Source of the DNA: Octopus bimaculoides
Lineage: Eukaryota
Assembly (NCBI RefSeq): GCF_001194135.2
Contig: NC_069005.1
Span: forward strand, 21,095,841 to 21,150,027
Length of the DNA: 54,187 nucleotides
Direction: 5' to 3'
Part shown: piece after piece, positions 26,747 to 51,790 of the stretch
Numbering within the stretch: position 1 is the first letter of the stretch
Layout: each line of letters begins with the position of its first letter
Made by a program: the position numbers and the translations under genes
The notes under the pieces: model-generated
Told to the model about the DNA's origin: nothing
Database searches by the model: none
What the model saw: the letters and a program-made list of their open reading frames with translations, nothing else

Positions 26747-26873
26747 AGAAAGGACATTTTGTGTGATGCTCTTCTGATGCTGGCACCCGTTATCCTTCTC
26801 GGAGTCAATAATGAAATACTACAATCGTATATATTGCTGTCTCCTAATGCTTTTTCTCCATGTCTTCCTGCAG

Positions 26874-26980
26874 GTTTGTTCCATGTTAAGCAATTACCAA
26901 AATTAAATGCAATCAGATGCCAAATGCCAGACACAACAGACTGGGCTTTTAAACTGAGACGTAAGAAGTTTGTAATTGAG
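26874..26980 (+). CDS. ELP4: ELP4 exon (107 nt; GLFHVKQLPKLNAIRCQMPDTTDWAFKLRRKKFVIE; phase 1/0)
   Basis: Acceptor tcttcctgcag, donor GAG|gtaaga. Confidence 0.96.
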
Positions 26981-27634
26981 GTAAGAGACTTGCGGCCTTG
27001 TTCTACTAGTCTGTCACATTACTTTATTACACTGCAGGTATTTTGTCACACTATCGTGTAACACTACATTGTAACACTATACAGTTACCTAATATTCTCA
27101 CACTCCCTTGTTACAACACCTTGGTAAGTTACATTGTTACATCCCATTGCAATACTACCTTGTTACATCCCATTGCAATACTACCTTGTTACACTTCATT
27201 GTTACATTACCTCATTACACAACCTTGTCAAGCAACATTGTTTCATCACATTGTAACTTGAAGTTGTTACAAGCTTGTTACACTATCTTGGTTAGGATGA
27301 GCCAAGGGAGCATCAGAATTGGTGTTTCTCAACCATTTTTTATCTACGGAACAATTTTATTCCAATTTTATTCAAATGGATCTTCATATTGTTTAGCAAA
27401 ATGCTTAGTGGCATTTCGTCTATCATTACGTTCTGAGTTCAAATTCCACTGAAGTTGACTTTGCCTTTCATCCTTTCTTGGTTGATAAAATAAGTACCAG
27501 TTGATCAATGTGGCCAATGTAATCAACTCACCCCCAACTCTGAAATTGCTGGCCTTGTGCCTAACTTTGAATCCACAATTAAATATTATGAGGAATTGTA
27601 TTAAAAAAATTGTTAAAATATTTTGTGTATTGTA

Positions 27635-30730: not shown

Positions 30731-31316
30731 TTACTGCTCTATGTTTGACTAATGCTTCGTTCTGAAGCATGTGTATATTCTTTTCTACTCTAGGCACAAG
30801 GCTCGAAATATTCAGGGAGGGGGCCAGTTTATTAGATTGACGTCAGTATGCAACTGGTACTTAATGAATCGACCCCGAAAGGATGAAAGGCAAGTCGACC
30901 TTGGCAAAATTTGAACTCAGAACATAAAGACAGACAAAATACTGCTAAGCATTTTGCCCGGCGTGCTAACGTTTCTTATTTCTTTATTGCCCACAAGGGG
31001 ACAAACAAAGGGGACAGACAAAGGGATTAAGTCGATTACATTAACCCTAGTGCGCAACTGGTACTTAGTTTATCGACCCCGAAAGGATGAAAGGCAAAGT
31101 CAACCTCGGCGGAATTTGAACTCAGAACGTAACGGCAGACGAAATACCACTTAGCATTTCGCCCGGCGTGCTAACGTTTCTGCCAGCTCGCCGCCTTGAA
31201 GGATGTGTATATTGAGTTCTACATAAGGTTATTAGTCTCACAATGCTTAAGCAAAATATCAAAACGTTAATCTTTTTACCATATTTGTCTATTACAATAT
31301 CTTTTTTATTTTTTAG

Positions 31317-31421
31317 AAACTTCATTTGCCTCCAGATCTCTCTGAAACAGTCAGCCGATCAGAAAGCCGACCTGGAATTATGGGATGTGGTAGCACTGGA
31401 CATCGGCATCTTGACTTCTAA
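31317..31421 (+). CDS. ELP4: ELP4 terminal coding exon (KLHLPPDLSETVSRSESRPGIMGCGSTGHRHLDF*)
   Basis: Acceptor ttttttattttttag; LHLPPDLS and C-terminal HLDF motifs; TAA at 31419-31421. Confidence 0.96.
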   Translation, partial: KLHLPPDLSETVSRSESRPGIMGCGSTGHRHLDF

Positions 31422-32143
31422 AATTTGATTGTTCATGAAGATGGTATGGAAACAGCTACTGGTGTTTGTTGTGATGATGATGGCCATCACGTTGACTGTA
31501 GTCCAGAAGTTTTTCTCACATACGCCATTGATGATGTAACACCGTTATCTCTTTATTGTCAATACCAGGACTATATTATGGCCAATACACTAATATCAGC
31601 ACAGTATCAAGATTAGATTTGGTATAACGATCTTGGGGTAGTCTTTTACATAATTTCAAATGTAATCGAGATGTCAGAATTGTTTCCCTTGCCTCTTACA
31701 TCTCGCTATTAACTCTGTTCAGCTCTCTTCACTAAAGGGAGAGAATTGAGAGAAATTTTCTCCCCCCCCCCTCATGTTAAGTGTGTTCGTGGCTGACCAG
31801 ACTACATCGAGATGAAGTGATGTTGTTTTATGGGCTTTCAGCATTATTTCTAAATATATAAGAAAGAACTGGTCAGTGAAATGTGTCTTCTATAAAGATG
31901 ACATTAATTGATATGCAAAAAAGAAAAAATAATGATTGTTATTAAGTAGAACAATTCATATAAGACATATAGACATTTCTATTTAAGTTTAAAACATCTG
32001 TTTGTCTGTCTGTCTGTATATATGTATGTAGGTTAACAGTTCAGGCATTGTATTCTCATCTGATGATTGTCGTTTAGAATATGAAACAAAATCCTATAGG
32101 GTGAACGATAACAAACACATCGAATATTTGCTCTACCCGGGTA

Positions 32144-32541
32144 TTGAGTTCTCCTTTACTTTGTTCACCACATATCTGGATTCACAAACAAAGACACTAC
32201 TGACTACACACACACACACACATGTGAAGGCACGTGGCCTAATGTTTGTCTTGTTGCCCTCACAACTGCAAGATTATAGATTCCATTTCTGGACTGAGCA
32301 GTGTGTTGTTTTCTTGAGCAAAACACTTCATTTCACGTTGATTTGAAATCATCTTGACATCTGGCATGTGGCACACTGCGCCTGTACAGGCAAAATCGAT
32401 TTGATGGAGGGAGTGAGCTAATGCACAATGCAAACATTTGATCACTGTAAAAGTACAAGTCATCTGTGCAGGTTGTTCAGCAAGGAATTGCAGGACTGTT
32501 GCCTGTTGTTTATGACAGGACTGTTCACTATACATACAAAG

Positions 32542-32572
<31 letters not shown>

Positions 32573-33205
32573 GATGCATAAAGGAATACTTAGAGAGTGC
32601 TTTGTATTATGAATTCTAAGAGTAAAAAATATTATATATTGTGAGAATTAGAGTATTCGATGCCTTACAGTGACCAGTGGTTTCATCCTGGGTGGCAATC
32701 TTCAAACTAGTGAGCAATTGAGAAATAGTTGTTTGTGAACCCATATAAATGGTGAACATAGCTGTTTGTGAACCCATATATATGGTGAACATAGCTGTTT
32801 GTGAACCTGTATATATGGTGAACATAGCTGTTTGTGGACCCATATATATGGTGAACATAGCTGTTTGTGAACCCACATATATGGTGAACATAGCTGTTTG
32901 TGAACCCACATATATGGTGAACATAGCTGTTTGTGAACCTGTATATATGGTGAACATAGCTGTTTGTGAACCCATATATATGGTGAACATAGCTGTTTGT
33001 GAACCCACATATATGGTGAACATAGCTGTTTGTGAACCCGTATATGTGGTGAACATAGCTGTTTGCGAACCCATGTATATGGTGAACATAGCTGTTTGTG
33101 AACCTGTATATATGGTGAACATAGCTGTTTGTGAACCCGTATATGTGGTGAACATAGCTGTTTGCGAACCCATATATATGGTGAACAAAGTAAAGGAGAA
33201 CTCAA
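32144..33205. mobile_element. Putative TIR element with subterminal 33-bp tandem array and an internal SINE
   Basis: TA|TTGAGTTCTCCTTTACTTTGTTCACC at the left end and GGTGAACAAAGTAAAGGAGAACTCAA|TA at the right end; about 47-bp imperfect inverted repeat. Confidence 0.6.
32727..33187. repeat. 33-bp minisatellite, about 14 units
   Basis: Unit ATATATGGTGAACATAGCTGTTTGTGAACCC.. ; the 11-aa period in the ORF track (MVNIAVCEPIY) confirms the 33-bp period. Confidence 0.95.
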
Positions 33206-33313
33206 TAGCTGTTTATTAAAAGTGTTGGGATTAGCTTGGCAGTGTTTGGATTATGTGATTGATTCTCTGTTTTAGTAGGTATTTGTGAACCTTTCAATTT
33301 CCAAAATGATATA

Positions 33314-33346
<33 letters not shown>

Positions 33347-34390
33347 ATTTGAGAACCAATCGGTGAATCTCACGTGGTCAGCAACAACATATACACATAC
33401 TCTAGTGTACTTTCTCTAATACAACAGTTTCTAAGTAGAACAATGATGCAACTGTGCTGGAAACATTCACTGTCAATCATTCACCAACAGCAAATTATTG
33501 GTTAGAAAATTCACCTGCATCCTACATCAGTCATTTACCAATTAGCATATAACTGACCAATAGCAAATTATTAATTAGTATCATGGTTCCAGTAAAGGGT
33601 TTAAGTAATAACAAAAAATAAATATCTATTACTCATAAAATTTATTTCAAAAACCTGAAAACATTGATAAAACTTTGAAAGGATTTGTAAAACTGAGATG
33701 TTGTGAGCCAAGTCTCATAAATGGGGGATAAAAGACTCATTAGCTTCATAGATCACAACAGACTGTTTTATTTTCTCATCACTGTTGCAATGTTTCTGTT
33801 TTTTCAGAGATCTTTGCTAAATAGTGAATTGCTGTCACTGATCTGTGCTTTATTGATTTATACATACATACATACATACATACATACATACATACATACA
33901 TACATACATANNNNNNNNNNNNNNNNNNNNNNNNNNNNNNNNNNNNNNNNNNNNNNNNNNNNNNNNNNNNNNNNNNNNNNNNNNNNNNNNNNNNNNNNNN
34001 NNNNNNNNNNNNNNNNNNNNNNNNNNNNNNNNNNNNNNNNNNNNNNNNNNNNNNNNNNNNNNNNNNNNNNNNNNNNNNNNNNNNNNNNNNNNNNNNNNNN
34101 NNNNNNNNNNNNNNNNNNNNNNNNNNNNNNNNNNNNNNNNNNNNNNNNNNNNNNNNNNNNNNNNNNNNNNNNNNNNNNNNNNNNNNNNNNNNNNNNNNNN
34201 NNNNNNNNNNNNNNNNNNNNNNNNNNNNNNNNNNNNNNNNNNNNNNNNNNNNNNNNNNNNNNNNNNNNNNNNNNNNNNNNNNNNNNNNNNNNNNNNNNNN
34301 NNNNNNNNNNNNNNNNNNNNNNNNNNNNNNNNNNNNNNNNNNNNNNNNNNNNNNNNNNNNNNNNNNNNNNNNNNNNNNNNNNNNNNNNNN

Positions 34391-34426
<36 letters not shown>

Positions 34427-35379
34427 TACACATACAAACACACACATATATATATAAAAGGACTATGTTTTCTGATTCTTAAATAAATTTCAGTATTGTT
34501 TAATGATTGATTTCATGTTTTTCTTTTAAAAATTTTGTTGATATTTTATTCTTTTACTGACTTCATTCATTGGATTGTGGCCATGCTTGGGCACTGGTTT
34601 CAAAGATGTTATATCATCATCATCATCATTTTGATGTCTGATTTCCATACTGGTATGAATTGGATACTTTGATTGAAGCAACAGGCCAGAGAGTCATATC
34701 TTGCTGTAGTGTCTCACTTGTAGGACTGAAGAGCCCTTGACTGAAGTGCCCTTGATTAGGAGCCGGAATCACTTTACTATTAGGGACAAGATTCATGGCT
34801 ACCGCCCATTTTACATGGGTGGTCAGGGAAGGATGGAGTTGGTGCCCCAAAGAGAGGCAAATATGTTGGTGATGAGGTGCCAGAATGAACCCTCGTGGTA
34901 ACATGTCCAAGAAAGTGAATAAAAGATAACAGGGATACAGAAGAATGGAAGGGGGCAGGTAAGATTGCAAGAATGTTGGAGGAGATGAAGAGATAGATGT
35001 AAACATGGGGCAGAAGTGGTTAAAAAAAAAGGATGGTAAATAAGAGGGTGGAGTGGTGAGAAATGAATGAGAAGGTGAGGATAAGAATGAGGTATGGATA
35101 TTGCAGAAGACATTTGAACAAGGTGCCATTGCAATGGGATAGAATCTAGAAATCATAAAGTTGCAAAGCAAACGTTTTAGTCACACAACAATGCTTGTTG
35201 CTTGATCAGAACTGAGCTGAGAGATTTAACAACAATGCCAATGGCATCACCACCATTACAACCAATCCGGGACTTACTTTGTTTGAAAAGGAGACAGGAG
35301 GTTGCCATGACCTGAATGGCTTTGGTCATCGGTCTTTTGCATCGAGGCTGATGTTGGGCTGAACAACAATTTGGATCGG

Positions 35380-35560
35380 ATTGTATTGCCTGGGTTCAGT
35401 TCACTGCAGGATGAAGGCCTCAGCATGTTCTCTCCACCAGCCACGGTCTGATGTGGAGGCTGTGAATTTGGACCTGGGATCATACTGGTTTGATGAGCCA
35501 ATTCTGCCGCACTGGTTTGACAGAGGGATCCTGTTTTTATACTCTTTCACAGGAGTAATT
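35380..35560 (-). mobile_element. RTE LINE 3' coding end fragment
   Basis: Minus strand gives SDRGWWREHAEAFILQ*, resembling the RTE C-terminal DR..WR...EAF.LQW motif. Confidence 0.5.
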
Positions 35561-35864
35561 GAGTTGATTACATTGACCCCAGTGTTCAACTAGTACTTAT
35601 TTTATCAACCCCAAAAAGATAAAAGCGAAGTCAACCTTGGTGGAATTTGAACTCAGAACACAAAGATGGACAAAATGTTGCCAAGTATTTTGTCCAGTGT
35701 GCTAACGATTCTACCAGCTCATCGTTTTAAACAAAAATAACAACTTTATATCAATATCAGTCATAATGATGCTGCAAAGAAAAAGTCTTTGATTGATGCA
35801 ACAGGCCGGAGAGCCATATCTTGCTGTAGTGTCTCACTTGTAGGACAGAAGAGCCCTTGACTGA

Positions 35865-35975
35865 AGAGTCTAGCTTGTGGTAGAGGTAGACCCAAGAAGA
35901 CATGGGATGATCTTCGAATGTTGGGCCTCAAGGAGGCAATGGACAAGCGACCGAGACCTTTGGTAATATGCATTC
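35865..35975 (+). mobile_element. RTE LINE C-terminal fragment
   Basis: GRGRPKKTWD..DLRMLGLKEAM..SDRDLW-like degenerate translation. Confidence 0.6.
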
Positions 35976-36293
35976 TTGCTAACTGAGTGAACTGAAGCAA
36001 TGTAACATGAAATGTTTTACTCAAGAACACATGTAGCACAGTCTAGGAATCAAAACCACGGATACACTATGTCCTGTTGTGGCCTCTGGCCTTCTCAATT
36101 CCTGTCAAGCTGACCAACCCATGCCAACATGGAAAACAGATGTTAAATGTCAAGAATCCAACACCCTAACCACTAAGCTACGAAAATCCTAACAAAAGAC
36201 TGTCATTTTTTTACAATAACAGTTGCTAGGACTACATTAATTAAATTTGAGAGAGATCTGGCTGGTATTTCTAGCATATTGAGTGCCCTAGTA

Positions 36294-36586
36294 CAGTACT
36301 ACTCAAAGTGGTGGTCATCCGTGGACCAGTGTCGATCCGCAAGCCATCAGCTGCTGGTGTGTGGTGAGTTTCCAGAAAAGAAAGAAACATTATAAAATAC
36401 TTATGTAATATTGTATTTGTTTACAAAATAAATATAAGATAACAAAAATTGGCAACTTTTATTAACCTCATTATATATATTATTTCTGGTATAAATTAAT
36501 ATTGCTAAGAAATATTACCAGTCCTTGGTACACTGGAAAAAAAACCCCATGCTGATCTGCCACATCAGATAGTTTGGGAAGCACTG
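36294..36586. mobile_element. hAT (Charlie-like) MITE
   Basis: CAGTACTACTCAAAGT...GTTTGGGAAGCACTG with perfect 8-bp TSD CCCTAGTA at 36286-36293 and 36587-36594. Confidence 0.85.
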
Positions 36587-37224
36587 CCCTAGTAGATGCT
36601 GGACTCCTTTGTTTGACTCAGTCAAATGTGATTTGAGGCTTCTTTACTTGTTTCAGTCATTGGACTGCGGCTATACTGGAGCACTGCCTTAAAGAACTTT
36701 TAGTTGAATGAACCAACCCAAATACTTATTTTTTAAGCCTGGTATTTATTCTGTCAGTCTCTTTTGCTGAACCACTAAGTTACAGGGATGTAAACACACC
36801 AACACTAGTTTGTCGAGAAGTAGTGGGATACAAACACAAGCACAAAGACACACACATAGACATGTATGTATGACAGGATTCTTTCAGTTTCCGTCTACCA
36901 AATCCAATCACAAAGCACTTTGGTTGGTCTGAGGCTATAGTAGAAGACACTTACTCAAAGTGCTATGCAGTGGGACTGAACCCAGAAGCATGTGGTTGGT
37001 AAGCAAGCTTCTTATCACACAGCCATGCCAGTGCTTTATATACTTTCCTGTTAAATATTTTTGCTGTAAGCCACTTTCATTATCCGCCATTCAGATATTA
37101 CTTGTTAACACTGGAATCTGCATGCATTGTTAGTATTGGTGAAAACAGCAGCCAAACACCCACCTTAACCCTAACCTTTAATTGCATTGAATCGCACTTT
37201 ACCGTCTTAAAAGCTGGAAGAACG

Positions 37225-37420
37225 TAGCGGATAATGTAGCCCTAGATACACTGTGTCTGAATAAAAGACAGAACACATTAGATAATGTAGTCTGAGATAC
37301 ATTGTGCCTGAATAAAAGACAGAACACATTAGATAATGTAGTCTGAGATACATTGTGTCTGAATAAAAGACAGAACATTAGATAATGTAGTCCTAGATAC
37401 ATTGTGTCTGAATAAAAGGT
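37225..37420. repeat. About 50-bp tandem repeat x4 inside an AAC-tailed element
   Basis: GATAATGTAGTC.GAGATACATTGTGTCTGAATAAAAGACAGAACA(CA)TTA repeated. Confidence 0.85.
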
Positions 37421-40319
37421 AGGATGGTCACAACTGGAATACCTTGAATCAAGTTTGCTGGGCCAGGGCTAAAAATGCAACAAAAACATCTGCAGCAGAA
37501 ACCTGTATGTGATTGATGAAACCAGTAGAAATAGCAGCTAAATATCCTTACCATCTTAAACAGGAAGGACAGTTTAGATAATGTAGTATTAATTATGTTT
37601 CATGTAAAAAGAATTGGTGTGGATGCTGGTGCCACATAAAAGGCATTGGTGCTGGTGCCACATAAAAAGCACTGGTGCTGGTGCCACATAAAATGCACTG
37701 GTGATGGTGCCACATAAAAAGCACCCAGTACACTCTGTAAAGTGGTTGGCAGCATTAGGAAGAGCATTCAGTTGTAGAAAACAAGTGAAAATAGACTATG
37801 GAACCTGTTGTGGCCTCTGGCTTTGTCAATTCCTGTTGAGCTGACCAACCCATGCCAGCATGGAAAACGGATGTTGTTAATGATGATGATGACGTATGAA
37901 TAAAAGACAAAATGGAACACTTTTCATCAGAAGTCTACTCCTACAGGCCCAATCTGGAGCTGTAGCCAATGAGGGAATCTCTCCATAATACCGAAAACAG
38001 CGATCAAATTCTGTTCAAATTACATCTGTAAGCTTAAAAAGAAGAATATGGTGGATGGTTACAGATGCGATATCTTTCATAATAAGCCTGCAGGATTCAG
38101 GCTGGCCTGGGGCTAAATTACAATAACTACAACAACAACATCAATCTGTTTGTCATTATTTAGGAATAATCATCGAAATATTGCTTAAAAGATTAAAGCT
38201 ATTTGAANNNNNNNNNNNNNNNNNNNNNNNNNNNNNNNNNNNNNNNNNNNNNNNNNNNNNNNNNNNNNNNNNNNNNNNNNNNNNNNNNNNNNNNNNNNNN
38301 NTCTCACAAAAATTATAAAATTATCTCTGATGGAAAATATGAATTTCAGTTAAGGTTGATTATTGTTTTGCTATTATAAGATAATAATTATTGATTAGTT
38401 CTTTGCAATTTCTTAGAACCAAGATTTTGTCAATTCCAAAGTCAATAATAGCTTCTCTAAATAGATATGAAGAAGTATTTCTTTTCATTCTGTTTGCTTG
38501 TTTTAAGACTTTTATAAATTTATGCACGTGTGTGCACTTGTGCGTGCGTGTGTGTGTGTGTGTGTGTGTGTGTATGCAGGCCCCTAGCATATTTCTAGGT
38601 ATGTTGTCTGCATTATCAATATTCAGCAACCATGTTTTCATCACCTTTTTCTTGTTTCAGTCAGCTGACTGGGGCCAGGCTGGGGCACCTAGAAACTATT
38701 TTTTTTAGTTGAATGAATCGACCTCAGGATTTTTACTTTAAGTCTGGTACTTATTGTATCGGTTCTCTTTTACCAAACTGCTAAGTTAACAACATTGGTT
38801 GTCAAGTGATGGTGGGGAGAAATGCAGACTGACACACACACACACAAGATGGGCTTCTTTCAGTTTCCATCTACCAAATCTGCTTACAAGGCCTTGGTCA
38901 GCCTGAGACTACAGTAGAAGACACTTGCCCAAGGTACCACGCAGTGGGACTGAACCTGGAACTATGTGGTTGGAAAGTAAGCATCTTACCACACAGCCAT
39001 GCCTGTGTCTATGGTTGTTATAGTTTTTACAACTGAAAATCCTTCTTAAATCCTTTTGTTACCATATTTCTGTTGAGATGCTCTGTGTTTCTTTCAATTA
39101 ATTTTAAATATAAGAAATAATTTAGTAAAATAACTTTGTTATCATTAAGCTAGTGTTAGGAACATAAATTGTGACTAAGGCTTGGTGGAAGATTTTAATT
39201 CAGAATTTTGCAACCAAGACATTTGTACTACAGAGCCAGAAGCAGTTTCAGGTGGATTGGTATCAAAAGGGTTAAAGTTAGTCTCAGATAAGGTGGGATG
39301 CATTTGCAGTGTCTTGAGGGTTTCTATAGAACAGTAGTTCTCAACCATTTTTTTAACTTTTGAACTCCTTTGATTCCTATTTTACTCAGGTGAGGAGACC
39401 TTCATAGCCATTTGATGTCTAAAAACTCCTATTATATTTTGAAGATTAAATATTTTTAGGAATTGTATTTTTAAAAATGTTAAAATATTTGGTGTATTGT
39501 AAGCAATTTATTGCACATGTATTTTAACAACAAAATCTTATGTGGACCATGGTGGAAAAGCTCTAAGTAGCAGAAGACAATGTCATCGTCATCATTTAAT
39601 GCCACTTTTCCATGTTTGCATGGGTCAAACAGAATCTGTTGATGTAGATTTTGGGGGGGCTGGATGCCTTTCCTGTCACCAACCTTTACCATTTCCAAAC
39701 CAGACAATATTTCCCCACTGCCAGACATATTTTTCAAGGGAGACTGTAAATGAGCAACATCATTTATGTAATGGCGATGCTCGTCTGAGTATGAAGTGAA
39801 ATATTGCATGGTAGTAAAAAATATGGGTATTGAATATGAAGGATGGGTAAAAGCTGGAGAGAATTGAAGTAATTATTTGCAGCTGGATGTGTAATGTTAG
39901 AGTATATGAATGATGGTGCATGATCTGAAAGAAAAACTGAATGTAAGAGGTATGTAATGTGGATTGCATGAAAGAATAGCTAAGAGGAAAGCAGTTGGTT
40001 GTGGGGAATTTGAAAGTGAAATGAAAAATAGGTCAAAACAAGAGAATATAAATATTACAGAAGAGAAAGAGGAAAATGATGCTTAAAAATATATCAAATT
40101 GGAAAGCCTCTGGACTACCTGGCATTCAGGGATCTTAGGTGAAAAAATCTCTCAAGTATGCACAGCCATATACAACTATTTCTTGCTGGCTGTATACAAA
40201 ATGGAACACCAACATGGATGACAAAAGGAAAGACAGGACAAAGAAAAGAGAAAAGTGAGTAATTATAGTCATTATATGCTTACTATTACTCTGTAAATTA
40301 CTAACTGGCCTACTCATAG

Positions 40320-41040
40320 CAGATGGAAAGGTTTGTTGTCACCGTCTAACAGTTTCCTAACATTCCCAGAGTTGAGGATAAATTTTCTGGTTTTAGGGGT
40401 GTGTCAAGATTGATAAATTTTCCTGTTTCTTCAATTGTATCATTGCATGATCTGCCAAGACCAGTGGCCTGGCAAGTCCAAGCAGGGCAGGCATTGTTTA
40501 AGGTTCCTTTTCAGGTTCCTGTTCCTGAATTGGATAGAACAATGCTGCACCTAAAGTGGTCTGCTCTGTCACTTTATGAGGATATAGATCCACATCTGGT
40601 CCAGGTCTGTGGAAAATGACCATCATTCCTGCAGGATCAAAGCTGAAGACATCCAATAGCTGTCCCCATTGCATTTTTTCCTATCACCACTAACTTACGA
40701 AGATAATGTAGATGCATTGGTGCTGGTGTCTTGGTTTGCTCAACAACCTGACAAAGACTATTATCGTTATAGTAGGCATGGTTTTGTGCTGAGCCAGTTC
40801 CACTCCCCGGCCCTTCAAACTTGAATTCGTCTGGCGCAACAAGTGCCATGTGCCAAATAGTTATCAATACGCAGGATTTGTATGGCACTACCTTCTCTTA
40901 GACGAACAGCTAAAGAGCTGAAAAGCCTCATCTACCCAGGGGGAACAGCAAAAGAGCTGAAAAGCCTCATCTACCCTGGGGAACAGTGAAAAAGCTGAAA
41001 AGCCTCATCTAACCCAGGTCTGTTGGGGTGTCTGTTAGTG
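40320..41040 (-). mobile_element. RTE-BovB-like LINE 5' region
   Basis: Minus strand RKFILNSGNVRKLLDGDN resembles the APE N-terminus (WNVRTLLD). About 37-bp tandem x3 at 40895-41015. Confidence 0.5.
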
Positions 41041-41149
41041 ATCTTCTGGAGGTATGTAAGTTGACCTATAGCTGAGATATTACTGTTCTGAGTCAGAGTA
41101 GACCTTCAAACAATAGTTGCTAAGAGGTGGTCAAATATTCCTCAGAACA

Positions 41150-41575
41150 CTGAAACTCCCAAATCAGGGCCCCACTACAGAATGCCATGCAAAGTCATCC
41201 AAACTACAGGCAGCTGCTGACAAACATGATATGAAAACCTTCTGTGAAGGTCTCAAGGCAATTTATGACGCCCTAAAACCAGTAGCATCACATCAGTGCT
41301 AACATCAGATATCACCCAGCTTATGGACAATAATAATATCCTCTCTCATTGAGCAGACTACTTCAATACAGTTATAAACCCAGTCTCTACCGTAAACATT
41401 ATTGTTTCCCTCCCACAAATGCTATCTTGGATCAGCTTGACTTGGATCATTCCTGTTAGAAGTGATGATAACCATAAAGAAGCTGTTCTCTGGGAAATCA
41501 CCAGGCTCTGATAGCATAACAGGAGAGGCCTAGAAGCATGGCAGGATCCAACTGGTTAAAAAAACTCACCAAATA
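41150..41575 (+). mobile_element. RTE-BovB-like LINE internal fragment
   Basis: KLQAAADKHDMKTFCEGLKAIY followed by degenerate K.LSGKSPGSD...KHG.IQLVKKL. Confidence 0.75.
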
Positions 41576-41960
41576 GTGGCTGTGTTGTAAGTAGCTTGCT
41601 TACCACCCACATGGTTTCGGGTTCAGTCCCACTGCGTGGCACCTTGGGCAAGTGNNNNNNNNNNNNNNNNNNNNNNNNNNNNNNNNNNNNNNNNNNNNNN
41701 NNNNNNNNNNNNNNNNNNNNNNNNNNNNNNNNNNNNNNNNNNNNNNNNNNNNNNTAAGCATTTCGCCCGGCGTGCTAACGTTTCTGCCAGCTCGCTGCCT
41801 TTAGAATAACTTTCTCTCTCTGATAGGCTCCTTGACAAGACAAGATTCTAAACTCTAGAAAAAAAAGATCTTTTATCACATGTTTCCAATGCTGTTTTGA
41901 GTGAGACAGTTAAATGAATTTTAAAAAATAAAAATATATATGAAAGACCCGTATACTAAC

Positions 41961-42021
41961 CTGGTTGATAGAAATTTGAGAAAACATGCAGTCAGTGGGT
42001 AACCAGATTGCTTTACTGTAT
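41961..42021 (-). CDS. ELP5: ELP5-like coding exon 2 (61 nt; (D)TVKQSGYPLTACFLKFLST(R), phase 1/2)
   Basis: Acceptor ttttcatttcag, donor AG|gttagt. G+AT completes Asp in frame with exon 1. Aligns by eye to human DSVEWEGRSLLKALVKKSAL; the 61-nt size matches the recalled human exon. Confidence 0.75.
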
Positions 42022-42649
42022 CTGAAATGAAAATTGGTATCTTAAAGTCTAATTGAGCAAAGTGATGATGATGATAATCCTTTCTAATATAGGCACAAGG
42101 CCTGAAATTTTGGCGGAGGGGGCTAGTCAATTACATCAACCCCAGTACTCAACTGGTATTCATTTCATCGACCTGGAAAGACTAGAAGGTAAAGTCAACT
42201 TTGGGAGAATTTGAACTCAGAATGTGAAGACGGAAGAAATGCTTCAAGTATTTCATCCAGCATGCTAACGATTCTGTCAGCTCACCGCCATAATAATAAT
42301 AATAATAATAATAATCTTTTCTACTGTAGGCACAAGACCTGAGGGGTATAGTTGATTACATTGACCCCAGTTTTCACTGGTACTTAGATTTATTAACCCT
42401 GAAAAGTAAAGTCAACCTCAGCGGAATTTGAAATCAGAATGTAACATCAGGCAAAATATCACTAAGCATTTCGTCTGGCATGCTAACGATTCTGTCAGCT
42501 CACCGCCTTAATAATAATAATAATAATAGTAACAACACTTCACTACAGTAACCATAAGAGCATCACAGCAAACCACAGCACATACCCAAAGCACACAGAG
42601 CTGCACTTGGTAGTGAAGTGAAAGCACGCTATAAAAATAAAACTACTGA

Positions 42650-42681
42650 ACAACAACAACAACAACAGCAACAGCAACAGC

Positions 42682-42731
<50 letters not shown>
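42650..42731. repeat. (AAC/AGC)n trinucleotide microsatellite
   Basis: Directly visible; abuts the 5' end of the Dong/R4 fragment. Confidence 0.95.
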
Positions 42732-42732
<1 letters not shown>

Positions 42733-43650
42733 ACTAAAGGAATTGAATAAGGGATTGTGATCGAGTGTGGAATAGGAAAAAAGGACAAAAATTAAATTCA
42801 AAGAGAGCACATTAGACAGATTGAAGAAAAACCTCTGCATGGTCAATTTTGGAGAGCCTTTGAAGATGTGGAACAAAATCCTGGGTTTGGTTAAAAAAGG
42901 GGGCAATTAAAAAAAGAAACAGAGAGCCTAATTGTAGCAGCCCTGAATCAAGTGATAAAGACAAACAACTTGAGAAAAAATGAGTCAGAAAAATGTAGAA
43001 TCTGTGGAACTTGGAATGAGACAGTGGCACACATTGTTGCAGAATGCTCCAAATTGGCACAAGAAGAATATAAGAAATGGAGGCACAACCAAGTAGTAAA
43101 AATTTTACACTGGAAGCTTTGCCAGAAATGGGGAGACACATGTTAGGAACACTGGGTTGAAAAAGTGCTGGAGTTGGAGAATTGTAAGATTCTGTGGGAC
43201 TTTCTGATTCAAACAGACAAGAAACTTGAAAATAATAGGCCAGCCATAACAATAATAGACAAGAAAAAGTGAAGTTGCCTACTAACTGATTCATCATGTC
43301 TGTTTGATTTCAGGATCATAAAGAGAGAAGACAAGAAACAGAAAAAATGCAATCTCTTAAAATTTGAAAGTGCAAGAATTTGGAAAATGAAATTTGTAAA
43401 TGCTGTACCTATAATAATTGGTGCATTGGGAACTGTAAGCAAAGATATAGACAAATGGTCGAAGGAGACTGGAATAGAATGCCCTGAAGAGCTTCTACAG
43501 AAACTTTGCCTCTTAGGAACAGGAAAGATTACCAGGAGGGTCCTAAGCATTTGAAAGACTATTGAAGGATTGTGGATACCTAAGGTCACAAGTAGGAACC
43601 CACTACCCACATAAATTCTACCAGGAACCCGAGTCAAATCAATTATAACT
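42732..43650 (+). mobile_element. Dong/R4-clade non-LTR retrotransposon 3' fragment (REL endonuclease)
   Basis: KPLHGQF; CCHC-type CRICGTWNETVAHIVAEC; RHNQV; KILWDFLIQTDKKLENNRP; VPIIIGALGTV...LQKLCLLGT. A related RT fragment lies at about 40095-40235. Confidence 0.85.
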
Positions 43651-44047
43651 TCATATGAGATCATATACATCCACCCTAGTACTTAACTGGTACTTATTTT
43701 ATTGACCCAAAATGGAACTTCTCAAACCGTCAATGTACAGTGTGCTCATTTGCCACATCTTCACCAGTTTTTGTTTCAAGATGTCTGGGATGCATTGGTT
43801 CCACAACGGAACTCATATTCATAAACAATATGAATTTTTGATCCCTCCATGGGTTCACAAAAATTGATTTACAAGAGAAAACTAACAATATAAACAAACA
43901 CCATGAATTGCATTTCTAAAAGTGATGCTGTAAGTCTTCAATGTTGTAAAACAAAGAATTGTCAGGATAAAACATTAGAGTTAGCAACTGTCAAATTTGC
44001 TGCATAAGAAAATCGGACATTTCATTCTTAATGACCTGATATATATA

Positions 44048-45319
44048 CACAGGGGTTGGACAAAATAATGGAAACATCTAGCATCATAATTTTGAAATAT
44101 CTATAAAACGATCAAAAGCTTGTTTATTTCCATGTTTTTTTTATTTATTATCAGTGTTCCTTAATATGTTTTGCTAAAATTGCTGCTTCTTTTCAGATAT
44201 CATCAGAAAAAGGTAATTAGAATTCATTAAAATGACAGATCTATCGGACTTTCCAAAGAGGTCAAATAGTTGGTGCTCGTATAGCAGGTGCTAGCGTAAC
44301 GAAAGCAGCCGAAAAGCTTGGTGTGTCAAGAAGTACTGTCTTAAAAGTAATGCCAGCTTTCGAGAAAGAGGGAAAAACCTCCTCGTTGAAACAGAACTCC
44401 AGTAGAAAACCAAAACTTTCAGATAGGGACCGTCAGACTCTTACACGAATTGTTAGAAAGGATCACAAAAGTACAGCTCCCAAAATTACTGCAGAGCTTA
44501 ATGACCACCTTGAGAACCCAGTTTCCACAAAAACTGTTTTCAGGGAGCTGCACAAAGCTGGAGTTCATGGGAGGGCTGCAATCAGAAAACCACTACTTTC
44601 AAAAACAAATGTTGCAAAGCGTTTAGAGTGGAGTAAAAACCTACAGAATAGGGCTCTAGAGCAGTGGAAGAATGTTATTTTCTCGGATGAGTCATCTTTT
44701 ACTTTATTTCCAACCACCAGCCAAGTATAAGTGTGGAGACAGCCAAAAGAAGCATTTGACCCAGACTGCCTTCTTCCAACTGTTAAATATGGAGGAGGAT
44801 CTATGATGATCTGGGAGGCTATATCTTGGAAATCCACCAGCTCAATGGTTTCCCTTCATGGCAGAATTAATAGTCAAGACTATTTTAGCATTTTATCTGA
44901 TCAAATTCATCTTATGGTTGCGGAACTGCTTCCGGAGTGAATCGCAATCTTTCAGGATGATAATGCACCAATTCACACAGCTAAAGTTGTTACTGAATGG
45001 CACAAGGAACATGCTAGTGAAGTTGATCATCTTATCTGGGCCCCACAGTCCCTAGATCTCAATATTATTGAACATTTATGGTGCATTTTAGAAAAACAAT
45101 TAAGGAGTCGATATACTCCACCATCAATCACTACAAGAACTGGAGACTGTTTTAACTGAAGAATGGACAAAAATTCCTTTGGAAACAATTCAAACTTTGT
45201 ATGAGTCCATACCTCATAGAATTCAGGCTGTAATTACTGCCAAATGTGGTCCTACCTCATATTAAAATTAATTTGTTTGAAATTTTAAGGTGTTTCCATT
45301 ATTTTGTCCAAGCCCTGTG
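44048..45319 (+). mobile_element. Full-length degenerate Tc1 (DD34E) transposon in ELP5 intron 1
   Basis: TA|CACAGGGGTTGGACAAAATAATGGAAACA...TGTTTCCATTATTTTGTCCAAGCCCTGTG|TA. Transposase 44232-45265 with FSDES, FQDDNAPIH and SLDLNIIEHLW, disabled by frameshifts and stops. Confidence 0.95.
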
Positions 45320-45338
45320 TATATATACAACTTCACAC

Positions 45339-45370
<32 letters not shown>

Positions 45371-46496
45371 CTTTTATCACTTACTTGTTTCAGTCATTAG
45401 ACTAAAGCAATGCTGGGGTACTGCCTTGAAAAATTTAGTTGAATGAATCAACCCCAGTACTTATGTGTTTAAAGCCTGATACTTTTAAGGAACCGTTAAG
45501 TTACATGGATATAAACACACCAACACCGGTTGTCGAACAGTGGTGAGGGACAAACACCGTCAACTACAAATATAATGTCTACTAAATCCATTCGCAAAGC
45601 TATAGTTGAAGACAACTATTCAAGGTGTTACGTTTGAGGACCGAACATGAAACTATGATTGGCAAACGAACTTCTTCACAACACAGTTATGCTGACAAAC
45701 ACACCCAAATGAAATACAGTTTACAATATTTAATGTTTTTTTTTCCCTTTAGTATAAAATATATAACTGCGTAAAAAAATATATTTCAAAGGAATCGTAT
45801 TGCTTTATAGAATACACGACTTTGAGGGACAATGCTTCAGGAAGCTGGACTTCTTGTTTCGTAGCTTATTAAACGAGTATTGGTGATGATGTCATACTGT
45901 ATTAGATTAAACGATGTTATTCCTTGCTTTACACACACACACAAAATTACATTTTATACAAACAAAATACAAAACATTATTACGTATACATATATGAAAG
46001 ACTATTGTTTGTTTCTTTCGAAAATTTAATAACGTTCATGTTTTTTTTTTTATTCTGGCTTCTGTTGTTTTTTGCGAGTTTAGAGCAGTAATATGAAGGG
46101 CTGCTATAATATGAAGGGTTGCCAGTCACAATTTGGTTCGTTTTTGACTATAGGTGTTCCAGTGGGACTTGGCATGGGACTAAAGTTCAACAATGCGTGT
46201 AGAGTAGAACCAGTATATTTCACAAAAAAAGTGGGGGAAAGACATTGTTCTTTGCTAAGAGTAGCAATACAAAGACCATTCTTCAACCTATTATCCGAAG
46301 TATTCTTCCCAGCAGACGAAAATAATTTTTAAAAAATACACGAAAATACAAAGCAGAGGTTCAAAACAATTTAACAGCAGAAACGATATCCAGATATGAA
46401 GCATGAAGTACTTAGTGGACGAGAACTGAGAAGATATAACATTCCTGTTCTATCAAGGATATTAAAGACGCAAAAAAAGTCCAAATGATTAATTAC

Positions 46497-46551
46497 CTTG
46501 TATCAAAACAACTTTCGACTGTTCAGAACCTCGGAGCAAGTTTTCCAACAT
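46497..46551 (-). CDS. ELP5: Elongator complex protein 5-like, coding exon 1 (55 nt; MLENLLRGSEQSKVVLIQ, phase 1)
   Basis: ATG at 46551 in CpG-richer context; donor CAAG|gtaatt. Peptide resembles the ELP5 N-terminus (human MLDSLLALGGLVLLRD, recalled), with the intron splitting the Asp codon. Confidence 0.75.
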
Positions 46552-46589
46552 GCTTCTTAGCGTTTTGACCTCTTGTCGTTTCGAATTTA

Positions 46590-46605
46590 GAGTTATCTCC
46601 CTTGA
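46590..46605 (-). promoter_or_regulatory. Candidate promoter-proximal motif TCAAGGGAGATAACTC upstream of the ELP5-like ATG
   Basis: 38 nt upstream of the ATG in a CpG-richer stretch; identical 16-mer at 21019-21034 (+). Function is inferred only. Confidence 0.3.
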
Positions 46606-47573
46606 TTAGATTGTAGTTACCGTTCTTTTTATTGTTTAACCCTAGGTATGCCATGATCGAGCATTTAACACATGAAGCGCATACAATTACACTACAAATT
46701 AGAGAAGAACATTGGGGTTCAAAAGTAAAAATTGCTGCGTTCGGAGAATGCTATACAATATTCTGAGAATTATTTAAGATTTTTTTTTCCGTTTTTTTTT
46801 TCGATTTGTCCGTAAAGTAAAAACAAGTGCAGAAACAATGCCATGACATACATGCATTCATATAAAAATTAAGTGAAACTCCAGCTGTTTTCGACAATGA
46901 TTACTTAGCTGTTAGATCATCTAAATTACTAGTTCACTGAATTAGCTTGTAAGTGACTAAGCATTTCACGGATACGTGTACAATTAAAAACAAACATCAG
47001 ATAGATTCAGCGCTGCGCAGTGTGTGATAACACTGTTCTTGAAAACGACAGGTTCAACATATCCAACTGACTTATGAGTGGGTCGATCTAAGGCAATGGT
47101 AAAACAAAATCTACTTGCTTAAGATGCAATACAGTGGAACTGAACCTGGAAATTTGTGATTGCAAAGCAAACTTCTTAATTATTTGATCATGTTATACTA
47201 CATATATACATACGCAGGAGTGGCTGTGTGGTAAAGTAGCTTGCTTACCAACCACATGGTTCCGGGTTCATTCCCACTGTGTGGTACCTTGGGCAAGTGT
47301 CTTCTACTATAGCTTCAGGCCGACCAAAGCCTTGTGAGTGGATTTGGTAGACGGAAACTGAAAGAAGCCTGTCGTATATATCCCCAAAGACACTAGTGTA
47401 GCTAGAGTGTGTGCTTCCCCCAGATTTTACAAAAAAAACTCATATTGCCTACAACAGGACGAAAAGTGCCACCCGGGCCAGACCGTCCCTACAGCCCTNN
47501 NNNNNNNNAAAGCCTTGTGAGTGGATTTGGTAGACGGAAACTGAAAGAAGCCTGTCGTATATATCCCCAAAGA

Positions 47574-47685
47574 CACTAGTGTAGCTAGAGTGTGTGCTTC
47601 CCCCAGATTTTACAAAAAAAACTCATATTGCCTACAACAGGACGAAAAGTGCCACCCGGGCCAGACCGTCCCTACAGCCCTAGTG
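47574..47685. mobile_element. Short hAT-type MITE (CACTAGTGTAGCT family)
   Basis: 8-bp TSD cccaaaga/tccaaaga. A partial duplicate sits before the 10-N gap. Confidence 0.7.
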
Positions 47686-48145
47686 TCCAAAGAGACGAGT
47701 GGCAAAGTTGGCCTTATCAGGATTTGAACTCAGAACGTAAGGAACTAGAAAAAAAACCATAAGGATTTTTTTTTTTTTGAACATTCAAACAATTCTACCA
47801 TCTCACCACCTTGAGGAACTGAACAAAAGTAACAACTAATGCCTACTGCTGTTGCCAAATATGTTAAAAATAATGTATTTGTCATCAATACAAAGAAAAT
47901 CAATTACTGTTTCAATTAAGACAATCATGAGTAGAATGCCTTTGATTACAGGTCTGCTGGATCAGAGCTGACCTGGGGCTAAATAGCAATGGCTTCTGAT
48001 TTAGGCCTTATGGCTAGCAACACTGAAGGGAGGGGATTGGTTGAATACATTGACTCCAGCACTTTGATGGTTCTTGGGCAAAAATGTCTTTGGTAGGATT
48101 TGACCTCTGAATATGAAGATGAAGGAAGTAAATACTATCTCAAGT

Positions 48146-48282
48146 CCCTAGCGTAGCTGAAGTGGGTGAGCAGTCCTGCCTGTGTGGTACTTTTAGGTCT
48201 GCTGTAGGCAATATGTGTTTTTTATGGGGACAGCAAGCAGAAGGGCCCACACTGGGAGGTACACACTCTAGCTACGCTAGTG
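48146..48282. mobile_element. Short hAT-type MITE, same family, opposite orientation
   Basis: CCCTAGCGTAGCT...AGCTACGCTAGTG with perfect 8-bp TSD TCTCAAGT (48138-48145 and 48283-48290). A third copy lies at about 52899-53043. Confidence 0.8.
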
Positions 48283-49820
48283 TCTCAAGTCTTAGAACTT
48301 ATAGGGCCAGTTACCTGGTTCCCCATGGTGTATAAGTGACCAAGATCACAACCTCATCATCATCATTTAACGTCCGTTGTCCATGCTGGCATGGGTTGGA
48401 CAGTTTGACCAAAGCTGGGGAGCTGCACCAGACCCCAGTCTGATTTGGCATGGTTTTTACAGCTGGATGCCCTTCCTAATGCAAACCACTTTACAGTGTG
48501 CTGGGTGCTTTTATATGGCACTGCAAGGCACCTTTATGTGGAACTGCACAGGTGCTTTGACATAGCACCACACAGGCACTTACATACACACACTATATAT
48601 ATATATATATATNNNNNNNNNNNNNNNNNNNNNNNNNNNNNNNNNNNNNNNNNNNNNNNNNNNNNNNNNNNNNNNNNNNNNNNNNNNNNNNNNNNNNNNN
48701 NNNNNNNNNNNNNNNNNNNNNNNNNNNNNNNNNNNNNNNNNNNNNNNNNNNNNNNNNNNNNNNNNNNNNNNNNNNNNNNNNNNNNNNNNNNNNNNNNNNN
48801 NNNNNNNNNNNNNNNNNNNNNNNNNNNNNNNNNNNNNNNNNNNNNNNNNNNNNNNNNNNNNNNNNNNNNNNNNNNNNNNNNNNNNNNNNNNNNNNNNNNN
48901 NNNNNNNNNNNNNNNNNNNNNNNNNNNNNNNNNNNNNNNNNNNNNNNNNNNNNNNNNNNNNNNNNNNNNNNNNNNNNNNNNNNNNNNNNNNNNNNNNNNN
49001 NNNNNNNNNNNNNNNNNNNNNNNNNNNNNNNNNNNNNNNNNNNNNNNNNNNNNNNNNNNNNNNNNNNNNNNNNNNNNNNNNNNNNNNNNNNNNNNNNNNN
49101 NNNNNNNNNNNNNNNNNNNNNNNNNNNNNNNNNNNNNNNNNNNNNNNNNNNNNNNNNNNNNNNNNNNNNNNNNNNNNNNNNNNNNNNNNNNNNNNNNNNN
49201 NNNNNNNNNNNNNNNNNNNNNNNNNNNNNNNNNNNNNNNNNNNNNNNNNNNNNNNNNNNNNNNNNNNNNNNNNNNNNNNNNNNNNNNNNNNNNNNNNNNN
49301 NNNNNNNNNNNNNNNNNNNNNNNNNNNNNNNNNNNNNNNNNNNNNNNNNNNNNNNNNNNNNNNNNNNNNNNNNNNNNNNNNNNNNNNNNNNNNNNNNNNN
49401 NNNNNNNNNNNNNNNNNNNNNNNNNNNNNNNNNNNNNATATATATATATATATATATATAACCATACACAGTTATATGCAGTCCTCCTTGAACAAGATGC
49501 CAATGTGTCACTGAGTTACTCATTTATAGATGTGTGAAGTGGAGCAATGTGAAATGAAGTGTTTTGCTCAAGAACATAATATGCAGCCAGTCTAGGAATT
49601 GAAACCACAATCTTGCAGTTGTGAGTGCAGTACTTTAACCACCAGGCCACGCATCTTTGCATGAAGATGAAGAACTAGAATAAATGTTGCATGGAATTTT
49701 TTATGACATTCTAGCAATTCTCACATCTCATCACCTTCTTGGAGTTAAACACCAATAATAGCCAAACTTCAGCATAACTTACAGAAATTTGTTCTTCCAG
49801 TATCGTTTTTTTTTTGAGTC

Positions 49821-50186
49821 TGTAGTAACGCCGTGCGCATGCGTAGTCTCACGCATGCGTGGAATTAAACAAGCAAGCGTTCCCGCTTAATTCTATCTCT
49901 TTTGCGGTCGGCCGACCATGAGCATCGGACGTGTTAAGCTGTCTCTCTACATCTTTCGGACTTACACTCGACAGCTCGCTTGCAACTACAGAACAACGTC
50001 CCAACAACTATGCTCACACACAACAGAAGCTGTAACAACAAGAACTAAAGATGTATATATTTACCACCTGAATAAAGTGTTGTTTAAGTTGATAGTCTGG
50101 AGTTATATTCTTTAATTTTATAGTAGGAAAGTCAGGTATACATCTAAAGATGTATAACCCACTTTCTACTAAAGTGGTTCACTAAA
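49821..50186 (+). mobile_element. Solo LTR, Gypsy-type (366 bp)
   Basis: Starts TGTAGT and ends ACTAAA (one mismatch from ACTACA); 4-bp TSD AGTC at 49817-49820 and 50187-50190; CpG-rich U3-like part and an internal AATAAA. Confidence 0.75.
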
Positions 50187-51364
50187 AGTCCTTTAGCATT
50201 CAGATCTCTCTGTCAAATGCAATGCTTATTTATTCCCGTTGTTTTGAATTAATCATGCATTATCCCATAGCTACGAGATTTGTGATTGTTTTATGATGTG
50301 ATTGTTTATTTTAAGAATGACACTGTAGAGTAAGTGTAAGAGGCCAGATCTGGCCTGTTTGAATATAAAACAGATGGAATATTTGGGCCTGATACAGCCA
50401 GTTTAAATGCTAAAGGATTCATGAAGTTTTCCTGAGATATATTTTAGATAGAGTAGATTACGATTACGCTGGTGGGGAAAATGGGAACAATACTTTTTTG
50501 TTGTTGTATTCTTCCATGCCCACCTCCTACTAAATTTATTACATCTTCTATCTTTTACTTGTTTCAGTCGGCAACCACAAATTGTCCCCGTTCTTATTTC
50601 TAAATCTGGTACTTATTCTATCGGTCTATTTGGATCTTTTTGGTTACTGTCACAGATTTCATATTTTTTCAGTTTTGTTGCGATTGTTTCCAAATTTGGT
50701 TATATCGATTTTTGTAAGCTAATTCTGAAAATGAAATAAATTTTTGCCATAAATTGATAAAAAAACGTAAATACCCTTTAAAGCTTGCAAATTTTAGGTA
50801 GTTTTAGCCAATCAAAAGCCATCATTATACACATGACCGTAAATCTCACATTGCTGTCTGTTTCCATAGTAACAAGCAAAGCTGTAGTCTACTTCATTTT
50901 TATTGTAATAAAGACATTGTATGGCTCAACTAAGATTTTCACCACCGCAACCACCACCACCACCACCACAAGTTTAGACGAGTGACATCATTTTGTGCTT
51001 GTATCATTGTTGTCTATCATTTTGTGACAAGCAGCTATCATGCAGAAAATGCACGGCCTTCTGATTCCTGTTTTCTGATTAGACTAAAAATTATCGAACT
51101 TTGAAGTTCTGGAACATTTTTCTAAACTTTTCTGGGAATAAATGAATCCCAAATTGAGATTCAATGTGAAAAATTACATCAGTATACCAAATTTTAAAAT
51201 TTCCAAATTTCTGACAACATCCGAAAAGATCTGTTTCTTTTTGCTGAACTGCTAATTTACAGGGATGTAAATGAACCAACAAAGGTTGTTAAGCTGTTGT
51301 AGGGAACAAACACAAAGACACACAGAGGATGGGTTTCCATGTACCAAATTCATTCACAAGATAT

Positions 51365-51790
51365 TGATTTTATTTGCATTCATGTATGTATACGATATAT
51401 GAATAATACAAAACCACATTAAAATACAAATCCTAAAACAATAGCCATGATTCTTCCGTAATACGAGTTCTCACAAAAGAAGGAGAAATGAAAAGAAAAT
51501 AGTGGGACGGGGGGGGGGAGAAAAAGAGGAGAGACAAAAGAAAAGAGAAGAAAGACAAAAAAAAACATCAATGCAGCACCAAGTGCTTCAATTCGTTGCA
51601 CAGCACAAGGTTCAACGGAACCCACTGAAGCAAGCCAGCATGGATGATGGCGAGGCTAAGCCGTTGGAGAAGCCAAGCGCTCTCACGGGCATCACCTGAC
51701 CACTCGGTGAGGCGAGCTGCCAACGATGACAAGAACTTCGCGGTTAGTCACTCAGTCCCGCCAAACGTCTCAAACGCCACAGGACTGTAG
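51365..51790 (-). mobile_element. CRE-clade-like non-LTR retrotransposon 3' fragment inserted in a SINE
   Basis: Minus strand YSPVAFETFGG...KFLSSLAARLTEWSGDARESAWLLQRLSLAII matches the C-terminal REL region of CRE-like elements, followed by a 3' tail ending near AATAAA. Confidence 0.65.

Follow-up and report, generated by a model that had tools for sequence, protein, structure and literature searches.

The region analysed is a 54,187-nt stretch of the Octopus bimaculoides genome (contig NC_069005.1, positions 21,095,841 to 21,150,027), referred to here as the window. The 3' part of ELP4 lies on its plus strand and the first two exons of ELP5 on its minus strand, with repeat-rich DNA and gaps between them. 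The features of the locus are:

8193-8228, 11134-11243, ~16543-16625, ~18420-18525, 23362-23530, 24554-24665 and 26874-26989, plus strand: further ELP4 (PAXNEB) exons
31317-31421, plus strand: last ELP4 exon; acceptor ttttag/AAACTT; reads KLHLPPDLSETVSRSESRPGIMGCGSTGHRHLDF; stop codon TAA at 31419-31421
31422-41654, no strand: repeat-rich non-coding DNA 3' of ELP4, lacking any ELP5 exon
32725-33187, no strand: 33-bp x14 tandem repeat inside the preceding feature
33911-34390, no strand: gap in non-coding DNA, touching no exon
38208-38301, no strand: gap in non-coding DNA, touching no exon
41655-41754, no strand: gap of exactly 100 N within ELP5 intron 2, 206 nt beyond exon 2; scaffold join
41755-41960, minus strand: first 206 nt of ELP5 intron 2, running into a SINE-like repeat at the contig end
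41961-42021, minus strand: ELP5 exon 2, codons 19-38 plus 2 nt (AG); acceptor tttcag/ATACAG, donor ACCAG/gttagt; sequence read and tblastn
42022-46496, minus strand: ELP5 intron 1, 4.5 kb, with transposon remnants
42895-43143, plus strand: reverse-transcriptase zinc-finger fragment in ELP5 intron 1 (Pfam zf-RVT, 19.5 bits)
44236-45156, plus strand: Tc1-like element in ELP5 intron 1 (Pfam HTH_Tnp_Tc3_2, 60.8 bits; DDE_3, 34.8 bits)
46497-46551, minus strand: ELP5 exon 1, start codon, codons 1-18 plus 1 nt; donor CAAG/gtaatt; sequence read and tblastn

A first-pass annotation had placed the end of ELP4 at 31421 on the plus strand. This position is confirmed by reading of the last exon and by the profile score of the joined window exons, which reach 201.7 bits against PAXNEB (PF05625; cut-off 28) over profile positions 81-366 of 366 and so belong to that family, with which they also share the conserved ...HLDF C-terminus. 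Two parts of ELP4 were looked for in the window and not found: the N-terminal exons, with ...STG..LD..LLGGG, and the exon that follows the 36-nt microexon. They may fall in one of the gaps (5145-5392, 8626-9046) or precede the window. When 92 aa of ELP4 were run through a word-indexed protein search, the sole match was a metagenomic PAXNEB fragment of 62 aa. In vertebrates, ELP4 is the 3' neighbour of PAX6.

Neither strand of the 10 kb from the ELP4 stop codon to ELP5 exon 2 showed detectable coding sequence. Pfam gave zero matches in the plus-strand ORFs of 31422-41654 and in each of the three minus frames of 32000-41960, and comparison of 31000-41654 with the ELP5 regions of O. vulgaris and O. 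sinensis yielded multi-copy repeat matches only.

On the minus strand, exon 1 opens with an ATG at 46551 and together with exon 2 comprises 116 nt, or 38 codons plus 2 nt (AG). The two exons had been proposed to splice in frame through canonical sites, and direct reading of both sequences agrees. The 38-codon peptide is 100% identical (38/38) to the N-terminus of the 302-aa O. vulgaris ELP5 CAI9740686.1 (E = 3.1e-15 in an exhaustive HMMER search of 1.84 billion proteins), a match well beyond chance; residues 1-38 are also identical in the O. sinensis ELP5 XP_029651141.1. CAI9740686.1 is a full-length member of Elong_Iki1 (PF10483; 57.2 bits, profile positions 1-292). Alone, the 39-aa fragment scores 19.3 bits against this profile (E = 9e-4, profile positions 1-35), below the cut-off of 22.5, and its place in the ELP5/Elong_Iki1 family comes through identity to residues 1-38 of the 57.2-bit protein. 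The resemblance to the ELP5 N-terminus that had been noticed in the first-pass annotation is thereby borne out. The 39-residue peptide given there stands for residues 1-38, while its final arginine had been read from an intron G; residue 39 is nevertheless still Arg in the real gene, since exon 3 starts with A and produces AGA.

O. vulgaris ELP5 residues 1-19 match window 46551-46495 by tblastn, the orthologous exon lying at 10001-10057 of the O. vulgaris ELP5 locus, and O. vulgaris and O. sinensis share with the window both the start codon and the exon 1/2 boundaries. Intron 1, at 4.5 kb compared with ~2 kb in O. vulgaris, is longer in the window because of its transposon remnants. Neither the peptide (phmmer, zero matches) nor a human ELP5 sequence (zero chains) matched any PDB sequence. 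Padded to 40 aa, the peptide drew zero candidates from a word-indexed protein search despite the identical N-terminus in the collection, the word index being too sparse to catch queries this short. Judged from their sequence, 46551-46497 and 42021-41961 are the genuine 5' end of ELP5, an ordinary single-copy octopus gene.

The window, however, holds only 2 of the 8 ELP5 exons. A tblastn search with the 302-aa protein (word size 2, E<=10) matched residues 1-19 and 15-39 only; residues 40-302, encoded by exons 3-8, were not found in the 54-kb window, and the locus there does not encode the whole Elong_Iki1 domain together with the conserved acidic C-terminus (...DDEDPDDDLDI). A segment reading VINCLETFTEGF at ~41240-41290 on the minus strand has an apparent likeness to ELP5 but was discarded, as its phase does not fit the exon 2 donor, stop codons follow it and the real exon 3 looks different.

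The break in synteny coincides with the gap at 41655-41754. Window 54180-41799 is collinear with 2233-12280 of the O. vulgaris ELP5 locus and with 1387-13432 of the O. sinensis ELP5 locus at 86-91% identity, and collinearity with both, whose references are two independent chromosome-scale octopus assemblies, ends at 41799, at the 100-N gap. The collinear flanks, including ~8 kb of 5' flank, mark 41799-54180 as the ortholog of these loci. Past exon 2, at least 21 kb of O. vulgaris lacks any synteny with the ELP4 side of the window; absent at the gap are ELP5 exons 3-8 and a further 9 kb or more downstream. At exactly 100 N, this gap differs from the other gaps in the window, whose estimated sizes are irregular, and it is flanked on both sides by SINE-like repeats, the final 44 nt of the intron 2 segment being a multi-copy repeat. 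SINE-like repeats are typical at contig ends. By these comparisons, sequence continuity across 41655-41754 is not supported, and the scaffolding join skipped at least ~25 kb.

The remainder of the gene is present elsewhere, probably in the same assembly. Exons 3-8 of O. bimaculoides ELP5 are on the unplaced contig LGKD02030886.1 (15,651 bp; GCA_001194135.2), where the ELP5 model XP_014787024.2 is flagged 'partial' and lacks exactly exons 1-2. This model has a spurious 28-residue N-terminus from a read-through intron and then continues as RYEQVHVLLL, which starts at residue 39. The exon 3 acceptor is ...ttattag/ATATGAGCAAG, and the A with which exon 3 begins completes the AG of the window as AGA (Arg39), in frame. 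The contig is collinear with 13770-23702 of the O. vulgaris ELP5 locus, directly past the end of the window alignment. Its first 1179 bp are unaligned to O. vulgaris or O. sinensis intron 2, so its tiling into the gap is only approximate. The window and the contig are separate records with zero sequence overlap and carry complementary parts of the same gene.

The first-pass annotation had described ELP4 and ELP5 as convergent neighbours, possibly an Elongator mini-cluster. In the window the two genes are not complete, contiguous and uninterrupted: the 100-N gap intervenes and 6/8 ELP5 exons are missing. Nor was the same pair seen within 10 kb in independent assemblies or related species, since no ELP4 exon comes closer than 10 kb to ELP5 in O. 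vulgaris (ELP5 at OX597838.1 ~16,802,893-16,816,141), O. sinensis (CM016883.1 ~8,124,112-8,136,897) or Argonauta hians. A PAXNEB gene neighbours ELP5 in none of the 7 species looked up (these three octopods and four further animals); the ELP5 neighbours across these species are Frag1, Bin3-methyltransferase, UBX, EPSTI1 and Skp1. In O. vulgaris a Frag1-family gene is downstream of ELP5, and O. vulgaris and O. sinensis are mutually collinear at 94-97% identity across 10 kb downstream of ELP5. A literature search on ELP4/ELP5 synteny found plant and fungal papers only.

The reading we favour, to which we give a probability of about 0.9, is that ELP5 is split across assembly pieces and that its convergent adjacency to ELP4 is an assembly artefact and not a cluster. 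One piece (41755-54187) would carry the 5' end of ELP5, exons 1-2, and another (1-41654) the 3' two-thirds of ELP4, the scaffolder having linked the two by a 100-N placeholder. Intron 2, exons 3-8 and the 3' flank, with which ELP5 truly continues, would have been assembled separately as LGKD02030886.1 and left unplaced; such a join would artificially put the ELP4 3' end ~10 kb from ELP5 exon 2.

Two other explanations take the juxtaposition, or the break itself, to be real. A true tight convergent pair would require a complete ELP5 within 31421-46551, with the later exons either concealed by gaps or diverged beyond detection. There are three gaps in the interval, but from ELP4 to exon 2 they add up to 674 N against the ~795 nt (>790) of coding sequence that exons 3-8 require, introns being extra, and the O. 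vulgaris counterpart of the missing part covers ~9 kb. Moreover, exons 4 and 5 (79 and 66 residues) are 94-96% identical between octopus species and should be easily detectable, yet they are unmatched, and the minus-frame Pfam scan was empty. This arrangement is already refuted, and its revival would need gap sizes to be grossly underestimated; we give it next to no chance. Hardly more probable is a lineage-specific rearrangement that broke ELP5 or copied exons 1-2 beside ELP4 as a fragment or pseudogene. Synteny does break within ELP5 intron 2, as such an event would predict, but the break coincides with a repeat-flanked N-gap. Furthermore, exons 1-2 have intact splice sites and encode protein 100% identical to that of two other species, the ~8 kb upstream is collinear with the orthologous loci and so indicates the ortholog and not a dispersed copy, and exons 3-8 form an intact open frame on an unplaced contig that lacks exons 1-2 of its own.

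Alternatively, the two genes could be loosely linked, with ELP4 on the same chromosome, downstream of ELP5 by tens to hundreds of kb, convergent with it and with at least a Frag1-family gene between. This proposal is compatible with the assembly-join explanation, because only the real ELP4-ELP5 distance differs between the two. The scaffolder set the ELP4-bearing piece beside the ELP5 5' piece, which suggests a possible shared chromosomal neighbourhood, and the 10-kb flanks in O. vulgaris and O. sinensis leave room for ELP4 to end at a greater distance. On the other hand, the stretch of O. vulgaris past exon 2 has no synteny to the ELP4 side, an annotated gene intervenes in that species, and small pieces are often misplaced or misoriented by scaffolders. 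We regard such linkage as a tentative proposal, somewhat on the doubtful side. The narrower version, in which octopod ELP4 and ELP5 would lie tail to tail within ~100 kb with one or two genes between them (e.g. of the Frag1 family), as a lineage-specific arrangement compressed by the scaffolder, seems to us rather unlikely.

It is therefore the assembly join, with ELP5 divided between the window and the unplaced contig, that best accounts for the data. The ELP4-ELP5 mini-cluster is not demonstrated, because the adjacency arises from pieces joined across a gap; the synteny break at the 100-N gap and the location of exons 3-8 elsewhere contradict it. Of the two origins that had been suggested for the pair, ancient tandem paralogy is left unsupported, since none of the 7 species looked up, the three octopods with their 10-kb flanks included, shows the adjacency, and a cephalopod rearrangement is unneeded, the join itself accounting for the juxtaposition. 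Had it been true, a conserved ELP4-ELP5 pair would have hinted at co-regulation or at an ancient tandem origin of the paralogous Elp456 subunits. By orthology, both are predicted to be normal Elongator subunit genes, whose products would have a RecA-like fold, assemble in the hexameric Elp456 ring and act in tRNA wobble-U34 modification.

For annotation, the 'partial' ELP5 model of O. bimaculoides can be completed with exons 1-2 at 46551-41961, and LGKD02030886.1 is placeable in the gap at 41655-41754. The case is also a warning against inferring synteny across placeholder gaps. A run of 100 N is a placeholder convention for Hi-C or mate-pair scaffolding, and the gap is probably a Hi-C-type join. 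The locus has the same features as known scaffold-join artefacts, in which placeholder 100-N gaps are accompanied by small contigs left unplaced: a gap of that size, repeat flanks, a break in synteny and the missing piece of the gene on an unplaced contig.

The exons at issue lie in the window as follows.

46551-46497, minus strand: ELP5 exon 1, starting at ATG, donor CAAG/gtaatt
42021-41961, minus strand: ELP5 exon 2, acceptor tttcag/ATACAG, donor ACCAG/gttagt
31317-31421, plus strand: last exon of ELP4, ending ...GHRHLDF-TAA

The first-pass annotation had spliced the two minus-strand exons into a 39-residue peptide resembling the N-terminus of ELP5, and this identification was upheld. When 1.84 billion representative proteins were searched exhaustively with HMMER, the peptide proved 100% identical (38/38) to residues 1-38 of a 302-aa protein, CAI9740686.1, annotated in Octopus vulgaris as ‘Elongator complex protein 5’ (E = 3.1e-15). 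Its sole Pfam match was Elong_Iki1 (PF10483), with residues 1-34 on profile positions 1-35 (E = 9e-4) and a score, for the peptide alone, of 19.3 bits, slightly below the 22.5 cut-off; CAI9740686.1 itself scores 57.2 bits across the entire profile. This protein shares its 90% cluster with O. sinensis XP_029651141.1 and with a ‘partial’ entry from O. bimaculoides; its ELP5 homologues in animals and fungi number more than 100 and have a ...DDEDPDDDLDI tail in common. The Argonauta hians ortholog is identical at 30/38 positions across the peptide stretch. Judged from these alignments, the window exons are genuine and rightly called ELP5. The splice itself stood for 38 codons and failed at the last residue: since the exons sum to 55 + 61 = 116 nt, only 38 codons plus the dinucleotide AG, residue 39 as read was borrowed from the intron, yet it is Arg in the true gene.

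The placing of the end of ELP4 at 31421 (+) was likewise borne out, the last exon being read there and the Pfam PAXNEB profile matched; seven more exons lie between 8193 and 26989 (+), and the joined exons score 201.7 bits (cut-off 28). An apparent 36-nt microexon at 8193-8228 (+) encodes ..GGIAVGSLVLI... The exons 5' of it, and the expected next one (approximately human residues 88-124), were not found in the window; they may be hidden in gap 5145-5392 or 8626-9046, or precede the window. With its N-terminal exons absent or within gaps, ELP4 could not be reconstructed in full length from this sequence.

In O. vulgaris, ELP5 comprises eight exons spread across 13.2 kb; the last six (exons 3-8) take up about 9 kb and code for 264 residues. 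A tblastn search of the whole window with the 302-aa protein (word size 2, E<=10) returned only residues 1-19 (46551-46495) and 15-39 (42034-41903), and Pfam scans of the three minus-strand frames of 32000-41960 and of plus-strand ORFs of 31422-41654 gave no match. Three of the nine N-gaps in the window fall between ELP4 and ELP5 (33911-34390, 38208-38301 and 41655-41754); at 674 N in total from ELP4 to exon 2 they are too small to hide the remaining ELP5 exons, which are outside this window.

The ‘partial’ O. bimaculoides ELP5 model is carried by LGKD02030886.1 (GCA_001194135.2), a contig of 15,651 bp with 2,973 N, resembling a short-read scaffold. The model is without precisely the two exons present in the window; its first 28 residues are translated intron sequence (…FFIIIIIIII), followed by RYEQVHVLLL… from residue 39 onward. 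The exon 3 acceptor is ttattag/ATATGAG, whose first A joins the final AG of the window to give AGA (Arg39), and the frame is kept. Comparison was made with the ELP5 loci of O. vulgaris (OX597838.1, L001), O. sinensis (CM016883.1, L003) and A. hians (L004), the first two from independent, chromosome-scale assemblies. Window 54180-41799 aligns collinearly with L001 2233-12280 and L003 1387-13432 at 86-91% identity, from the upstream flank of ELP5 through both exons and the intron between them into the first part of intron 2. The contig begins where this alignment ends, and is collinear with L001 13770-23702 and L003 14650-23408; window and contig show similar divergence (about 87-92%) from both species. 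This likeness, together with the exact complementarity of the two gene halves, suggests that the window, too, belongs to the O. bimaculoides assembly. The first 1.2 kb of the contig does not align to intron 2 of other species, and its tiling into the gap is therefore approximate, not base-exact.

It is at the gap at 41655-41754 that synteny is lost. Window 31000-41654, to its left, has no collinear block with the ELP5 loci, only multi-copy matches to a SINE-like repeat, and the terminal bases on either side (41575-41654 and 41755-41798) are SINE-like repeats. The O. vulgaris and O. sinensis loci are collinear with each other across all 33 kb, including 10 kb downstream of ELP5, at 94-97% identity. 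A gap of 100 N is the customary sign of a join with unknown size, and the exact 100-N length here suggests such a join. The window most probably comprises two assembly pieces with a placeholder between them: a right piece stopping 206 nt into ELP5 intron 2, and a left piece with ELP4 followed by 10 kb of 3' sequence rich in repeats. The true continuation of ELP5 was most probably assembled as a separate small contig and never placed; at least 9 kb more, including part of a Frag1-family gene, lies beyond it in the sister species and is also absent here. With the ELP5 remainder and this downstream sequence missing, the join therefore skips roughly 25 kb or more.

The convergent ELP4/ELP5 mini-cluster proposed earlier is not real at the claimed scale, given the loss of synteny at the gap and the failure to find the window's ELP4 exons within 10 kb of ELP5 in L001, L003 or L004. 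Ancient tandem paralogy of the two genes, suggested as its origin, finds no support. Since the two pieces were set side by side, both genes may come from one region of a chromosome. For annotation, the partial O. bimaculoides ELP5 model can be completed and LGKD02030886.1 placed in the gap.

The window also carries the following repeats and transposon remnants.

44236-45156, plus strand: degraded Tc1-like transposase in ELP5 intron 1, scattered across three frames (HTH_Tnp_Tc3_2 60.8 bits; DDE_3 34.8 bits)
42895-43143, plus strand: reverse-transcriptase zinc-binding fragment in ELP5 intron 1 (zf-RVT 19.5 bits, weak, below cut-off)
590-1576, plus strand: second mariner/Tc1-like transposase remnant (HTH_Tnp_Tc3_2 and DDE_3, weak, below cut-off)
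32725-33187: 33-bp unit x14 (92% match), shortly downstream of ELP4
4224-4616, 26351-26750, 36643-37021, 38645-39005, 47225-47381, 52275-52730: examples of SINE-like copies
14885-15105: lone relative, inside ELP4, of a ~183-bp unit

Segment 45359-44720, overlapping the Tc1-like stretch, matches intron 1 of O. sinensis at 90.8% and does not align to O. vulgaris; the content of ELP5 intron 1 therefore varies by species. The 33-bp repeat gives spurious 150-200 aa ORFs in several frames on both strands. Copies of the SINE-like element (~400 bp) are numerous, in either orientation, both in the window and at the loci of O. vulgaris, O. sinensis and O. bimaculoides, and contig ends fall on such copies. 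The ~183-bp unit is in tandem ~7x in O. vulgaris ELP5 intron 4 (L001 17673-18988).

Annotated genes within 10 kb of ELP5 were surveyed in seven species, and PAXNEB was absent from them in 7/7.

Neighbours of ELP5
O. vulgaris: 5.8 kb downstream, a Frag1-family gene (PF10277) in convergent orientation
O. sinensis: no neighbour called
Argonauta hians: Bin3-type methyltransferase, upstream
Mya arenaria: UBX gene and transposase-like genes
Aplysia: EPSTI1
Solemya: UBX gene
Sycon: Skp1

In both bivalves, Mya arenaria (L005) and Solemya velum (L007), the UBX-domain gene stands head to head with ELP5, upstream of it, an arrangement that looks like conserved microsynteny without relation to ELP4.
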